Assembly: GCA_038496445.1 (NCBI GenBank)
Contig: JALMLS010000143.1
Coordinates: forward strand, 124,001-188,000
DNA: 64,000 nucleotides
Direction of reading: 5' to 3'
DNA from: Trichosphaerium sp. ATCC 40318
Taxonomy: Eukaryota; Protista; Tubulinea
Below are positions 49,910 to 57,614 of the stretch, piece by piece. A program made the translations under genes and the position numbers. The notes under the pieces are model-generated. The model was not told the origin of the DNA. It searched no databases and worked only from the letters and a program-made list of their open reading frames with translations. The first letter of the stretch is position 1. Every line of letters begins with the position of its first letter.

Positions 49910-52900
49910 TCACTCGAAATATACTGTTGCAACATCTATAAGTTTCTTATGGGCACTAGAAGGCACCCTTGATACAACAACAGTATGTTCCTCATTGGAT
50001 AAACCAAAATGTGTATATACAGTTATCTTTACAGTTACACCTTCTGTGAGTATCTGCTTCGAAGGAGAAAACATGCGGATTAACACACGATAAGATCCGT
50101 TCATTGCATCTCTAACCTATAAAACAGTGTTCATACAAAAGGTCTCTTGTAAAACAGCACGTTTTTTTTGTTCCAAAGCAGTTTCTTGTTAACACGTACC
50201 ATGTATTCAACAGGCCCATAACCTTGAGAAAAATCCCTTGACATCAAACCACCGTTTTTAGTTGTATTACAGAACGAATAGCAAGCAGTGTTATCAGGCT
50301 AAACCTCGTTAAAAACTTTCCACGCATTTGTAAAATCCGTACCTCCAAAACATAGAGTTCCATATCTACTGCGTCTGTATCCCAGGCACATACAACGCGC
50401 AGATCAACATGGAGTTGTTTAGACATCAAAGCGCTTATCTTTGGTATCTTATGTATACGTAGAGCGTCTACTCTTTGTACTATACTACATATATCCATAA
50501 TGCAAACCGTCTCAACTTGACTATATGTCAAACCAGTTAGCGTTACAAGATCTCCATTGGTTTTGTTCTTACTTAAATCTCTCATCCCAAGAGCCTTCAA
50601 CGACATCCATTAAATGCTTCAGAGCGTCGACGTTTAATCCTAATGAATGAAAAGCATGTGCTACATCTCTATGCGACTGAGGCTCTTCAGGACGCATCTT
50701 TAGTATTCTCTTATATATTTCCAGTGCTGAACGATACTCCTTTTGTTCTTCAAGAACATACGCCATCATTCTAGAACAGAGAAAACTGTTAGGGTATCTA
50801 CGACTACTCATAAAACCATACCTGAGATACTTTGGTTCATCAATCGATACCTCTGCCATATTGCTTATAATGTGAAGAGCTTCTTAGGTTTTCCACTTGT
50901 AAACAATTTACATGCTGTTTCAAAGTACAACATTGGGTTCACTTGTTTACCATGTGCTTCATTGCAAATTATTTTATATTTTTTCAACACATCAGTTCCG
51001 ACGTTATTCTATTCGTAGATATCAAACAGAGCACTAAATTCGCTTTTTCTTGATTGTACCTTTTTGCTACCAAGAATGAACTGAGAAGAATACCGAGTTT
51101 GTGGCCTCTCGACCCTAACAATACAATGGCGCTTCGCAATATTGATTTTCTCAGCGGATATGTATGCAAACGTCTAAAGCGTAGTTTTAAGAAAATAATA
51201 AGATACTGGTTATTTTCGTACATTTCTCGAAATGCTTGTTTGATCTTCCTCCGAGAAACTTTGTTGAATCTCGCTCGCTTGTTGATCACCGCCTTCACAT
51301 GCTTGCATAATTGTAGTCCAGTATTCTAAGTTTACTGTCAAGAACAGGATAATTGTGTTGTGTACCTTGAGATGTGTTTAAAGGATTTTCCGTAGTTTGT
51401 TCACTAGTGAACTCCTCTGCAAACAACGGCTGAATTTTCTGGCTGTTTTGAGTTGTGACATGTGTCGTTATTCGAGGATTTGTGCTAGGATAGAATACAG
51501 TTTTACGATATTCAATTTTCTTTAACCATGAGTACAATAGTACAATAGGCACGCATAACAGCATACCAAGATATCCATACATAGCAGCTAACATACTGTT
51601 AGTATACCCCCGCAGAACTCGTAACGAACAGTATAAGCGTTCCTTCACCATAATGACACCACCAGTAGTAGCGCTAAACGCGGTACATATAGCGCTCCAT
51701 GCATAGTCGAAAGGTAAGCTAGAACGAACACTTTGGATTACATGTGGTGCGTGGTTCCTTATCATGTTCCTTATCATCAAGCCAATACTTACAATCGCTG
51801 CTAGCATTACAAACCATTTCCAGGCTTGAGTGCATGTTATGCAGTTGCTTTTTGGTTTAAACTTTTGGTGTTGTGGCTGTGGCTTGATTTCTAGCGGATA
51901 GGCAGCTGCTAGTGCTTTCAAGTCAACAGAATATTCTACACCCAAGCGCTTCAATAAACAACTCTTCCACAAAAGTTAGATAGATATTGCAGAGTGTAGC
52001 TTACTTTTCCTACTGCCGAGTCTCCTATGTACGCGACTAATAATCATATTAACCACCTGAACTGGTGATAAAAAAGTTACCTTTGAATATGAAGGACGAT
52101 TTTTTTGTGTTGTATGCCATCATGTAAGTTTCTTTAGAAATTAGCTGATCAAGACTATCGAGTTTTTATTGTTTTTATTTGTACCTTCATACATGGCTAG
52201 TGCTGCTTCATCTAATCCTTGCATTGTTTTAGCGGATGTCCTAAAATGCAGCATATTGTGTGATTCAGCGTATGCTTGAGCTTCTTCTAAAGAGACTACG
52301 ATATTTTTTTTAAATCAACCTAGGAAAAATATTAATTTAATGCTTACCAAGCGAAAAAATACTCTATGTCTATCATGTTGTACCTTGTTTCCCAGCAATA
52401 TTTTTACTGTATCTCCAGTACATTTTGTTTTTATTTCATTCTCCCACATACTGACATTTTTGAACGATTCTCGATTTGTTAAGTCATAAACAATCAAGAA
52501 CTACAAGCGTCAAGTTAGAAATAGAGTTTATCGTTCTAATACACTTACAGTTGTAACGTTGCGATAGTAAGAAGTTGTTATCGTCCTAAATCTTTCTTGT
52601 CCAGCCTTTAGAAGGAAGTTAGCAAACCTCACGTGCGCAGTGGTTAGAACATAATATTCGTACTGTATCCCACATTTGAAACTTTGCTCTGTTACCGTTA
52701 CCCAGATCACAGCTAGATATTTGAAAATCTACTCCAATAGTGGATATAAAACAATCCGTAAAGCTACTACCACCTGTACGCTTAACAGAAGACTTTGGTC
52801 CTTGAATGAATGAGAAAAAGTAAGAACAAAACGAGAAACTTACTAGCTTGCTTTTTTGGACGTTTTTGCTTTTGTTTCAGTCCTCTTTGAGAACCACTCT

Positions 52901-55900
52901 CTTTCTTTCCACTTAGGCCCACACAAGAAAGGAGGTTTGTTGACGCCTTTGCAATATTCCTAATAGCACCAAAACGACGACGAACTGATGACGCCTGTGA
53001 GAGATGTGTACTACCTCGAGATATGTTGCTGTCTACTTGAGATATATTTTTGCTGATATCATTTATCATTTCTCTTTGGTTTTGAAGACTATCAAGCACG
53101 CTACTTCCCAATTCCTCTGTTTCGATTGCAATTCTTTGAGCATCCTGTAGTAACCTTGAGGAATCAGCTGCTTTATCTTGATGAAACAGAAGAGCTTTCC
53201 TTTTTGCAGATTTGCTGTATCTTGATGACTTTGGCTTTGGTTGTTCTTTTGCTTTTGCTGGTTGTTTCATTTTGGCTGGTTTGATTGGTTTGCTCCTTGT
53301 TGGTTTTGGAAGTCTCTTTATATCGTTTTTGAACACGACCAATTCGTCTTCTTTATCTTTGAGTGCTACTGCTTCTCTTTTGCTGTAATTGATGGTATTT
53401 AAATAAAAGTTCTTCGTTGGTTCCATTTTTTCCTGTGTTGTAGTATCGCTTACAGAGAGTTGATGTGGCTTGATCATTTGTGTTTGTTCGTTATATTGAG
53501 TGCTAGAATTAAACGCGTGATTGTAATCAGATAATTCAGGAGAAGATAGGAAGTCGTCATTTACTTTGAAGTGAAGCATGTGGTCATGTTGCGATCCTTG
53601 AAGACCCCACCTAAACAAACTTATGAGAAAATATTGAACTTAGTCTTCAGCGAGTACCACGTCTTTCTTCGCTCCCATAGTGCCATCACTCGATTCATTT
53701 TTTCATGATGCTTGTTTTCCTTTGATTGTGCTCTGATTGCTGATATTTTAAGAAACTCTCTTCGAATATCTTTCAGCGCAAATGGAGGTTCAATGTCATA
53801 TTTCAAAAACTAGTAAGAATTGTAAGCGACCGGACTTAGTGTTTGTCATGTACCTGATCAAGCGTGTCAAGTACCAGCAAAGAAGTTCCTTCTGTCACCA
53901 AGGTGAACTCTTTGCCTATGTCAATAAGTTGTTCTTCAAGCGTAGAATCAGTTTCAGCGTCCAAGGTCAGCACTTCAATTTTGCGCTGGTTCAATATTAG
54001 TGTATTGTATAAAAATAGCACCGTACTTGTGCCCAAAATCTGGCCACCAGCATGTCTGTATGACTTTTTCCTTGGTTCTTTGATGCTTTTAGAGTAATAT
54101 CTATAGATTTAGTGATGGCTCTTGACGCAAAAAAGCCAAAATGAAGCGTTATAGTAATATTTTTTTCTGGTATGTGATGAAGTTTTCCACTGATATTTAA
54201 TACAGAAGTAACTGGGACAGGTGCGCTAGGAAACACCTATTCTTAAAGTGAGAGATTTTTAAATATGTAGAGATCATACTTCGTGTATGTATTCTTCAGG
54301 GTATGTAATGTCGATTAGCCCAAATGTCGGTTGAGTAATTGCTTGAAAAGCGCTTTGAATGTCTAAAAAGTTCTGGCTACAGTTGAAATTTCCTCCTCCA
54401 CTCTTACGTCCCCATAGCCTAACAAAGGTAAGAATCAATCTAATCCTAAGCGCTTACTTTAACTTCATGTGGTTTGCCATGGACGAGCACGTGAAAAAGT
54501 ACACAGGTACTAAAAATACAGTCAATTGCAACAGTAGTAAAAATTGATTTTAACCTTTAAATTCTGGTAGTTCAGGCGATCCAACTGTATCAAAGCCATC
54601 CGTGAATGCTAAAAAATAGCTGTAATCAGTTTGAGAAGAGCACTTAGAAGGTGCTTTTATGTGACTCAGGTCGCTTCCTACATGTATGTGAGGTGTTGTA
54701 AACTCAGTTCATTATGTACCTCCATCATACCATAACGAAGATAAATATGTACATAACTTCTCAACGTCACACAAAGAGAAAGTCTTGGGCTTTTGGCACG
54801 AAAATGAAAAGCAGAACAAATGGATCAACACATCTTTAGTTCCGTACACACGCAATAATTTGGATAGAATTTGTTTTAGACATTTTATGGAACGTGTGCA
54901 ATCTCGGTGGCTGTAAGACCTGAAAGTGTGTTAAAGTTACCTTATATGCTTGGATATTAGTCAATACGTACGTGTCCCAATAAATACCAATCAAGGATGG
55001 TAGTGTTGATGTTGTCACGCTTGGAATTTGAACAGGTTGCTTAATAGCAAAGTAAGAGCCTAAACGCGTTAATATCGGTAGGATGAATGCCTTAAAGAAA
55101 ACGCTTACCTCTTGCACTGGTTTCACTAAGCACGTTTCCTGTAATTGCTGGTATTTCAATATGAACGTTCTCGTTCAACTTTATGTTTCGTTTACTTGAT
55201 TCAAAAATCCACCCATTTGGTTTGCTGTGCGTTCTGGAATCTTTACTGAGTGCGCCCGTACTCTTCAAGATGGGCTTAGTAGCTCCGTCTCCATCTGCAA
55301 CATGAATCTTGGAAACTTATTAAAAAAGAACTACGGAAGTGAATACCTTTAAACTACACTTTTTTATAGTGGACGCTGCAATGTTAAACAAGCTCTTGTA
55401 GGTATAGCATGAACCAGATACTACCAAATCTTTTGTATAGTGCACTCGAACAGTCCTACTACCCTTTGAAGGTATAGGATAAATCCTTGCTTTGAATATA
55501 TTTCCAGCCTGGAAATCACGTGTCAGCCCACGTGTCAAGCGAAAAAAAAGAGAATAAGCGTAGGAGAAGGCGTACAACTTGTTCAACAATTGCTGGTCCT
55601 TTCGACTGCTTCCTGACCTCTCCTTCGAATGCAATCCTGAGTGGACGTTAGTTTGCTTGGTTTTTCGTCAGATTTTATTTGAAAAAAGGTTTGTAGCTTT
55701 AGAAATACGCAACTAGCGCTCTGATGCGTAATTAAGCGTACCTTGCTTTTACTTTAGGGCATACAACGCCTGGTACCATTTTTCCGTTAATGTCGACAGC
55801 ATAACCGCAAATACTTGCGCCTTGGCGTTTATTTAGATTATAAATGCGATTGATCGTATTTTCCGCACCTTCAGGAAGAGGAAACACTAGTTCGCCTTCA

Positions 55901-56085
55901 ACGTCACCGTCTGTACTCTTATTCGCCCAAACCATTGTAAGAATAGTTTCTAGAGGACTATAAGCTCTTTATCAACTTACATCGTACCAACCTGACAAGA
56001 AACCTCGAATGTTAACATCTATGTCTATAAGCTCTGCAAGTAGCTGTTTTTTTGTTGTTTTATTGACCAATTGCACTGATGACAT
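49910..56085 (-). CDS. Multidomain VIT - vWA - SNARE motif - circularly permuted Rab GTPase - hydrophobic segments - TPR - DUF2135 (YfaP-like) protein; two apparent 1-nt deletions
   Basis: VIT: [42 protein letters not shown]. vWA MIDAS: IYWDTSYS, YDGGSD, FTDG. LVTEGTSLLVLDTLDQFLKYDIEPP. TPR: RPEEPQSHRDVA. DUF2135: DLRVVCAWDTDAVDMELYVLEP..GGLMSRDFSQGYGPVEY. Frame breaks at the T8 tract 52304-52311 and near 50884. Confidence 0.9.
51945..52775 (-). other. Circularly permuted Rab1/Rab8-like GTPase domain, order G2-G3-G4-G5-G1
   Basis: Spliced [72 protein letters not shown]. Confidence 0.92.
52990..53165 (-). other. Qb-type SNARE coiled-coil motif (Vti1 / SNAP-25 N-like)
   Basis: DSSRLLQDAQRIAIETEELGSSVLDSLQNQREMINDISKNISQVDSNISRGSTHL with a zero-layer Q. 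Confidence 0.85.
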
Positions 56086-56226
56086 TATGTACAAAAGTGT
56101 ACTCTAGAACAACTTATTTCTTTGAAAACATTGATCACCAAGTTGGTAAAAAAGACTACGACTGAACCGGTTCACAAAGCTATTGACTACTTACGTGAAA
56201 ACAGCAAAAGCTTTAAAGTAGGCAGA

Positions 56227-57614
56227 ATGTCAAAGCTTGCCGACGCTGTTATATGTTCTATTGATACACTGTACATGATATGTGGTGTTTGTGACAGTTT
56301 TAAAACAATACTGAGTTTATCAAGTACAAATACAACTATTTCACTTACAATACGAAACTACAACACATCTATGCTTCTTTTAAAACAAAGATGGCCAATT
56401 CTTCATTGGGGTCCCAAATGTCGTTGGCCAGTTGACGTATTGACCAGCTCTTCGTGGCAAGATGTGTTTTATTTTGCATCATATATTGAGTATCAAGAAC
56501 ACGTGCGCAGCATTTATCTCTGTTTTTGTTTGTTGATGTTTTCACAGGCACCTCTTACAATTAAGTGGCCGTTCTATACATCATTTTTAGATATTAGGAC
56601 GGGCTTAAAATACTCGGGTAAGGTAGAACTTATACCTTTCTACTGGCGGCTTGAAGCTAAGGTTTTAAGCTACACTGTACATATAAGTAGAATGATGCTA
56701 GTATCAGAAGATGGTAGGAATTTGTGGTCGCATTGGGTTAGCTTCTCTAGCTACAGGAGTCACCTGATCACCAAGGATATCGTTGTCGTTGCAACTACCG
56801 AAAAGATAGCAGGGGTTGACACCAGAACAGGAGAGGTAAAATGGGAAGCAAATATTAGCCTTAAGAAACCTCGAATAGCTTGCACAAAGAACCTTGTGTT
56901 TTACATTGATAATGAAGCTTCAGGTTGGTTATTGTCCAGTCGTTCATTATTTTGCTTGAGTTTATATGAAGGTACACAAACTATAAGAAATGAAGTACGA
57001 CTAACATCACTTCAAAAGGAAAAATTTTATGGAAAAAAAATGTGATTTCACGTGTTCCAAAAGATGGAAGATTAGAAATTCGCGCCAGTGAGAATCTTGT
57101 AGCTATTCAAAGAGTGAGTCCGCTTCAATCAAAAGGTGGTGTACTATCCATAACGGAAAACGCTTCAATCTACGACATAAGTTCATTTAAGTTTATTGGA
57201 GAAGTGTCCCATAGTTGTAATGATTTCGAGTGTTGGAATGATAAAGTTATTATCACATCAGATAAAGATCTTTATTGTTACACACTTACAGGAACCGCAT
57301 TGAGTCTAACGTGGAAAGTGCAAGTTTCTACACGGTTTGCAGATAGCCTTCTATTATTTGGAGATGGAACATTACTCACCTACACTTGCTCTAATAATTG
57401 GACTGACGGTGTTGAGTTGTCTTTGGTTGAGAGCGATGGCACTAAGAAATGGTCATATTGTGTTGATACAGATGGTGATATGAACTCTAGGAGTCTTCGC
57501 AAGATAGATATTGATATTCGTTCTTATCATGGTATATCCGTAGTCGCTAGAGACCAGCATTCCACATGTGTAGAGGTGGTGACTTGGAAAGGTAAACAAC
57601 TTTTTAGCAGTTGA
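56227..57614 (+). CDS. F-box-like + PQQ-type beta-propeller protein
   Basis: Divergent F-box-like N-terminus (ILSLSSTNTTI..LLKQRWP..SWQDVF); propeller blades IAGVDTRTGEVKWE, LSLYEGKILWK, DGTKKWS. An intron at ~56972-57018 joins the two ORFs. Confidence 0.65.

Follow-up and report, generated by a model that had tools for sequence, protein, structure and literature searches.

How did a Rab-type GTPase and a SNARE helix come to lie within a protein whose two ends are of bacterial type, and what might such a protein do? This question is raised by a single gene of the amoeba Trichosphaerium sp. ATCC 40318 (Tubulinea), located on the minus strand at positions 49910..56085 of a 64,000-nucleotide (nt) stretch of DNA, referred to as the window (GenBank assembly GCA_038496445.1, contig JALMLS010000143.1, positions 124,001 to 188,000). 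The gene (ATG 56085-56083, TGA 49912-49910) comprises 29 exons and ~1,589 codons, with two frame breaks, and all of its features are given below in window coordinates on the minus strand. Its product begins with a VIT and a vWA-like domain (N block) and ends with a TPR and DUF2135 region (C block). Between these blocks, in place of the linker found in bacterial relatives, lies an insert of ~690 amino acids (aa; residues 593-1279), consisting in order of a basic linker, a Qb-SNARE motif, a circularly permuted Rab-like GTPase, hydrophobic segments and a Gln/Glu-rich linker. The original prediction, made from the letters of the sequence, had placed the VIT, vWA, TSLLVL/YDIEPP, SNARE, permuted Rab, hydrophobic helix, TPR and DUF2135 elements in one exon chain; its coordinates proved exact, and the elements are recovered by Pfam matches, motifs and hydropathy. 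The interpretation tentatively preferred here is that the insert forms a membrane-anchored binding or addressing cassette within a bacterial-derived scaffold, encoded by one amoebal gene.

A scaffold shared with bacterial proteins

The VIT domain (residues ~12-135; 55419..56052) is recognised on a single exon by Pfam (E 2.2e-7, 31.4 bits against a cutoff of 26.5). It is followed by the vWA-like domain (residues ~245-400; 54358..55003), in which the motifs of the metal ion-dependent adhesion site (MIDAS), DTSYS, YDGGS and FTDGF, align with the bacterial D.S.S, DG(G/A)T and (S/T)DG. The intact DxSxS and TDG motifs noted in the original prediction are thus present, but the Pfam VWA model finds no match on single exons and the assignment rests on the MIDAS motifs, a family-profile match to ITIH4 and a Foldseek match to ITIH1. 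The remainder of the N block (53607..54357), identified by blastp, contains TSLLVL, YDIEPP and a conserved WW. The C block begins with a helical/TPR part (50517..51122) containing RPEEPQSHRD and WDERF, recognised by Pfam TPR and blastp, and closes with the DUF2135 (YfaP_C) region at the C terminus (49913..50516), where the last exon matches Pfam with E 9.9e-8 (32.4 bits against a cutoff of 22).

Two annotated 'VIT domain-containing proteins', found by tblastn of the TPR exon against plasmids, served as bacterial references, and both contain VIT, TPR and DUF2135 in Pfam. By blastp, residues 12-568 of the amoeba model align with residues 32-574 of an Aureibacter protein (E 6e-48) and residues 1336-1595, in the numbering of the first model, with its residues 766-1003 (E 4e-40), while no alignment to this protein is found between the two blocks. 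A search with the Aureibacter C block returned 2,712 proteins, the best 120 of which are typically 900-1,050 aa in length (range 556-1,217) and contain VIT and DUF2135; the source names among these 120 are all prokaryotic and almost all bacterial, with one archaeal. Both blocks align to the amoeba model in 119 of the 120, bearing out the earlier description of a bacterial-type scaffold with a variable centre. In these bacterial members the blocks stand a median of 151 aa apart (range 83-414), compared with ~741 aa in the amoeba, and where the bacterial gap is long CarboxypepD_reg, SdrD_B or Plug domains sit exactly between the blocks. The bacterial members carry hydrophobic N-terminal leaders, whereas the amoeba protein begins at the VIT domain and lacks a signal peptide. 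It is a cytosolic-type derivative rather than a typical member of the bacterial family.

A profile built from 36 members matches ITIH4 across VIT and vWA (E 3.8e-14). The AlphaFold (AF2) model of the bacterial member P0256 has a mean predicted local distance difference test score (pLDDT) of 80.4 and a predicted template modelling score of 0.78, with both blocks modelled confidently as one unit and a disordered linker (residues 631-689) below pLDDT 50; its best Foldseek match is ITIH1 (E 1.5e-20). The bacterial inter-block linker is a natural insertion site, and the amoeba insert sits there. The P0256 model also matches an 809-aa chain of the Trypanosoma brucei flagellar doublet 96-nm repeat (chain 4s, 9e5c_4s; E 3e-14); archaeal ArnAB and Sec23/24 trunk vWA proteins are also among its matches. 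Searches with PADLOC models, and with NCBIfam models at their cutoffs, gave no match to the bacterial members, and a literature search found no paper naming DUF2135. Among the viral contigs searched there was one DUF2135-like match, and a giant-virus signal was absent.

Several further candidates were set aside during these searches. A profile search with the TPR exon returned only generic multi-TPR proteins, none of which match the model beyond the TPR. Flagellimonas/Allomuricauda proteins (L002:4945-6687 and L010:4993-6699) combine CarboxypepD_reg and Plug with a scaffold-like TPR module, without VIT or detectable DUF2135; they were rejected as scaffold members, having only the TPR module in common, and suggest that this module also travels on its own. 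In the contig GCA_003507755.1 (L001:1-2917) of a bacterial metagenome-assembled genome, a copy of the scaffold gene is spread over five open reading frames (ORFs) with frameshifts and stops, one piece of which has a weak TonB_C match. This frameshift-broken copy was dropped as a reference.

The circularly permuted Rab-like GTPase

The GTPase (residues ~855-1040; 51928..52777) is encoded on seven exons and is recognised from pieces of Pfam Ras and a downstream P-loop. Its motifs occur in the order G2 (STIGVDF), G3 (WDTAGQE), G4 (GNKVD, read across the first frame break), G5 (TSAK) and G1 (GDSAVGKS). Positions 22-55, 75-120 and 121-152 of the Pfam Ras profile follow one another along the chain and only then comes the P-loop, a departure from the canonical order G1-G2-G3-G4-G5. 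Helix 5 leads through a 12-aa connector into strand 1, the P-loop and helix 1, and the chain is cut in the loop that connects helix 1 with switch I. Remnants of this loop persist at both ends of the domain (SSFTDCF at the start and GVEYSVD at the end), which would fit an origin by duplication and truncation.

Searched singly against the PDB, the exons have their best matches among Rabs only, namely Ypt1, Rab1, Sec4, Rab8, Rab35 and Rab18, and by these matches the domain is classed as Rab1/Ypt1/Rab8-like and not as Rab5-like. Switch II (TITTSYYR) and the P-loop are closest to those of Rab1. As the original prediction stated, the Ser and Tyr found in switch II of Rab1 can be read directly in TITTSYYR. 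The domain retains all five G motifs intact, and the SNARE motif its zero-layer Gln. A prenylatable C-terminal Cys motif is absent from the Rab domain, which is internal to the protein and followed by the hydrophobic helices.

The literature yielded no paper describing the order G2-G3-G4-G5-G1 and none on a permuted Rab. This domain would represent the third natural circular permutation of the P-loop GTPase fold, after the described YRG and cpRAS, the first to affect a Rab and the first with its cut in the helix 1/switch-I loop. Since the cut sets both chain ends beside the nucleotide-sensing switch, the domain would provide a natural test of how the Ras fold can be rewired and a template for switchable insertions.

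The SNARE motif, linkers and hydrophobic segments

The exon upstream of the GTPase encodes both linker 1 (residues 593-740; 53163..53606), a low-complexity Lys/Pro-rich region without a Pfam or PDB match, and the Qb-SNARE motif (residues 741-796; 52995..53162), with its zero-layer Gln in LQNQRE. The latter is recognised by Pfam V-SNARE_C (E 1.7e-8) and in the PDB aligns with Vti1a (2nps_C, E 4.2e-6) without gaps over 56 residues, Gln standing at the zero layer, and also with Vti1b (1gl2_C). No Pfam match to the V-SNARE (Habc) domain was found. Nor does a membrane anchor follow the SNARE motif directly, as there is no hydropathy peak before residue 1076. At 52880-52994, after the motif, the sequence RRRFGAIRNIAKASTNLLSCVGL is basic (RRR) at first and weakly hydrophobic thereafter; it resembles a worn Vti1-type juxtamembrane region and anchor, and on this view the SNARE piece would have been copied with its tail.

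Three hydrophobic segments lie directly downstream of the Rab domain (51532..51822), at residues 1076-1096 (Kyte-Doolittle hydropathy 1.89), 1116-1134 (1.39, weak) and 1150-1172 (2.14), and are the only hydrophobic peaks of the whole protein in the hydropathy scan. The exon encoding them has no relative in Pfam, the PDB, the Atlas or a metagenome scan. The insert closes with the Gln/Glu/Thr-rich linker 2 (residues 1173-1279; 51123..51531), which is interrupted by introns at 51365-51326 and 51221-51174. The base composition is the same across cassette and scaffold and the cassette has seven introns of its own, which together indicate that it is not a recent foreign insertion. A search with the 255-aa SNARE exon found no homologue, within a length restriction that placed full-length relatives outside its range.

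Gene structure, transcription and integrity

The gene model was curated by hand from a six-frame reading and inspection of the junctions, with introns fixed through the peptides they create and with two homology-based corrections; a naive longest-ORF model, in which the frames were chosen wrongly, was rejected in favour of the homology-guided one. The curated model contains 28 GT-AG introns of 38-105 nt, with GTA donors in 25 and TAG acceptors in 19 of them. The short introns of the Trichosphaerium genome, which was assembled with Canu from Nanopore and PacBio reads, polished with Pilon and has a GC content of 37.69%, fit those of the window. The published gene table of this genome lists two single models named 'DUF2135 domain-containing protein', of 1,456 and 1,603 aa and with bacterial best hits, neither of them mapped to the window.

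Evidence for transcription comes from the single public RNA run that matches part of the stretch (X1), from a related strain with 95-99% identity. Contigs of this run confirm four introns (55950-55991, 55821-55868, 55308-55346 and 50299-50342), and the joints, which read CT..AC on the plus strand, equal the modelled introns. Transcription is thus from the minus strand, with splicing that follows the model at either end of the locus. Unspliced contigs lie at 51721-51885, in the membrane exon, and at 50579-50768, and contig depth is similar, and low, in all three regions covered, namely N block, membrane exon and C block.

The modules are separated only by GT-AG introns of 40-48 nt in compatible phases. 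The first W codon of the conserved WW in the N block is split, as TG and G, by the 47-nt intron 53657-53611, and the WW is completed only by splicing to the exon with linker 1 and the SNARE motif, which supports the continuity of scaffold and insert. Upstream of G2, the first Rab exon lacks an ATG in frame, Rab helix 1 and the hydrophobic segments share one exon, and the N and C halves of the scaffold flank the cassette in family order and on the same strand. This structure leaves little room for separate genes and points to a single one.

The original prediction of a continuous chain therefore stands as regards architecture, but it did not mention two 1-nt frame breaks and a hidden intron. 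The intron (50821-50771; GTATGG...TCTAG) is 51 nt long, in frame and free of stops within the TPR exon, and was revealed only by comparison with bacterial homologues, being deduced from a 17-aa surplus over the bacterial proteins in a MAFFT alignment that is bounded by GT..AG. Similar hidden in-frame introns may lengthen other exons here, for example those of 767 and 598 nt. A 32-nt intron at 50911-50880 was rejected, as reading through with a 1-nt break fits the bacterial length and residues.

The first frame break (52303..52311) falls in an A8 run (52311-52304) within the G4 NKxD motif of the GTPase, where the reading GNKVDLKK-IVVSL requires A9. This reading is preferred because it matches Rab G4 and the segment after it, while the alternative that keeps the ORF (an exon extended to 52320 and a 33-nt intron) loses the D of NKxD and the next segment and was discarded. 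The second break (~50885-50883), upstream of the TPR, needs one more base; reading through it gives 14 residues colinear with the bacterial proteins by MAFFT, with A, G, K, K, A and L in common. Both breaks are single-base deletions in an A-rich context and there are no nonsense codons elsewhere in the ~1,589 codons. For both, assembly error is considered more likely than decay. If that is the case, other genes of the same long-read assembly may also hold false frameshifts.

Comparison with known systems

The original prediction had linked the insert to cpRAS, a permuted family of Ras GTPases with a TIE G2 motif, a cut between strands 2 and 3 and the order G3-G4-G5-G1-G2, which is found in cpRAS-ZnF-VWA or A2M-like proteins (Elias and Novotny 2008; PMC2430557). 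It remains the closest precedent: both are permuted Ras-superfamily GTPases in which helix 5 is joined to strand 1 inside a large protein, with a vWA neighbour or, in DdiCPRas2, within a bacterial-type scaffold acquired by gene transfer. Membership in cpRAS was, however, rejected. The G2 motif of the amoeba domain is STIGVDF (the Rab-type TIGVDF, with RabF-type motifs) instead of TIE, the cut lies between helix 1 and switch I, the motif order differs, and so does the architecture, in that the vWA of cpRAS proteins is of the Sec23/24-trunk type and accompanied by a zinc finger, without VIT, SNARE, membrane helices or DUF2135. The YRG/YlqF proteins are likewise naturally permuted P-loop GTPases, but they have the order G4-G5-G1-G2-G3 and form an ancient ribosome-assembly family that is not Ras-like.

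The bacterial VIT/DUF2135 proteins, such as WP_309942093.1 of Aureibacter tunicatorum, share with the amoeba protein the colinear VIT, vWA-like, helical, TPR and DUF2135 regions and the motifs GNxFK..IYPIP, D.S.S, TSL(I/L)VLD, (I/V)PP, WW, RPEEPQS.RD, W..RF and GYGPE. They differ in their length (~950-1,000 aa), signal peptide and linker of 83-414 aa, which is of low complexity or bears domains, and they are without introns, SNARE, Rab or membrane helices. ITIH1, ITIH4 and PARP4 share the unit of VIT and MIDAS-type vWA; the ITIH proteins, however, are secreted and lack TPR-DUF2135, and none has an inserted Rab or SNARE. With Vti1-type Qb SNAREs the insert shares the 16-layer motif, the zero-layer Gln and the basic RRR after the motif, but it lacks Habc, and its nearest hydrophobic helix is ~280 residues away, beyond the Rab. 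Similarly, the five G motifs, switch II, P-loop and helix 1 are held in common with Rab1/Ypt1, Rab8/Sec4 and Rab35, while in the amoeba the order is permuted, the hypervariable tail is absent and the domain lies within a chain of ~1,589 aa.

Possible function and alternative explanations

Under the preferred interpretation of a membrane-anchored binding or addressing cassette, the gene would descend from a secreted bacterial VIT-vWA...TPR-DUF2135 protein. The sequence shows that the signal peptide has been lost and that the disordered inter-block linker has grown into a trafficking-type cassette. The cut between helix 1 and switch I and the join of helix 5 to strand 1 place the ends of the Rab chain side by side, an arrangement that suits a domain inserted in a loop. 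The N block, SNARE helix and Rab domain may face the cytosol, and the chain may be led back to that side by a hairpin of the two strong hydrophobic helices, allowing the C block to pack against the N block in the manner of the bacterial model. In this arrangement the Rab would be permanently tethered to the membrane, without a cycle of prenylation and GDP dissociation inhibitor. With ~280 residues between it and the anchor, the SNARE helix may bind partner SNAREs but would hardly drive fusion, and a binding or addressing cassette is accordingly favoured over a fusion engine. Through such a cassette the vWA/MIDAS scaffold could be brought to a compartment of the Rab1/8 and Vti1 type, or be linked to the corresponding machinery, and the GTPase, adjoining both tethers, would serve as a nucleotide switch built into the protein. 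If this is true, the anchoring of a Rab by transmembrane helices and the separation of a SNARE helix from its anchor would be unusual uses of the trafficking machinery.

Several points weigh against this interpretation. The scaffold-insert junction is bridged by none of the reads or contigs of X1, one mRNA being deduced from the gene structure, and no homologue with the same cassette was found in the SNARE-exon search or in the Atlas and metagenome searches with the membrane exon. The topology of two or three helices is a guess from hydropathy, and the tethers beside switch I might block the binding of effectors. The two frame breaks, one of them within G4, could mean a pseudogene. Moreover, the related strain differs at nine listed sites, by four synonymous changes and five mostly conservative replacements, which suggest no more than weak purifying selection and are too few to judge it.

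The original prediction had proposed that the insert may be bait for pathogen effectors or proteases, or may recruit the scaffold to trafficking membranes. In an integrated decoy, the Rab1-like domain and the Vti1-like helix would imitate frequent targets of intracellular bacteria and viruses, and modification, cleavage or binding of this bait by an effector would be sensed or neutralised by the VIT-vWA...DUF2135 body. Placement of the insert in a loop that is disordered and tolerates insertions, on an otherwise compact scaffold, would suit such a role, as would a SNARE helix too distant from its anchor for fusion and hence a binder. Retention of the Ser and Tyr in switch II has also been put forward in its favour, but this pair is common to many group-I Rabs and is not evidence for bait. 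The scaffold, for its part, has no recognisable signalling or killing domain and its bacterial members have no PADLOC match, while the intact catalytic motifs are something that a bait does not need. A literature search found no paper on integrated decoys in amoebae. The integrated decoys of plant nucleotide-binding leucine-rich repeat receptors (NLRs) offer an analogy; in bacteria the same scaffold site hosts differing domains, although these are not host mimics. A decoy is deemed rather unlikely, and the anatomy is matched no less well by a cassette that brings the scaffold to trafficking membranes. The extension of the decoy idea to an amoebal family, in which the bacterial-derived scaffold displays copies of core host proteins (here the Rab1-like switch and the Vti1-like helix) to lure the effectors of intracellular bacteria or giant viruses, is unlikely. 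Were the bait reading true, it would reveal in a protist an integrated-decoy immune system on a scaffold unrelated to NLRs, and if the display of host modules were family-wide the scaffold may be a general display platform in amoebae, with a bearing on protist immunity and the domestication of bacterial genes.

A decaying or neutral product of exon shuffling, transcribed but yielding no full-length protein and with a cassette that has no selected role, would explain the presence of two frame breaks within 4.8 kb of coding DNA, the replacement of a residue in five of the nine listed strain differences and the failure to find a homologue with the same cassette. Such decay is nevertheless improbable, given the lack of any nonsense codon, the intact G motifs, SNARE layers and splice sites and the correct splicing of the RNA, and given that single-base deletions in A-rich sequence are typical of the residual error in long-read assemblies made with Canu and Pilon. 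It is far less probable still that the model is an artefact, the VIT-vWA, SNARE/Rab/membrane and TPR-DUF2135 parts representing separate genes or a chimeric assembly. No RNA contig spans the junctions, as this would predict, but the compatible phases of the 40-48 nt introns between modules, the WW split over the junction with the SNARE exon, the Rab part without a start codon of its own and the ordered flanking of the insert, on one strand, by both halves of one bacterial-type protein all speak against it, as do the single DUF2135 models of 1,456 and 1,603 aa in the published annotation.

Genomic neighbourhood

A divergent neighbour (56122-57614, plus strand) starts ~40 nt from the ATG of the gene and consists of two long ORFs with a weak match to PQQ_2/BamB-like beta-propellers (E 2.8e-5, below cutoff). 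F-box-like LPxEIL motifs occur elsewhere in the window at 1943 and 30212, both on the plus strand. In the published Trichosphaerium table, F-box genes with giant-virus best hits adjoin a DUF2135 gene on scf.00224, which may be this contig.

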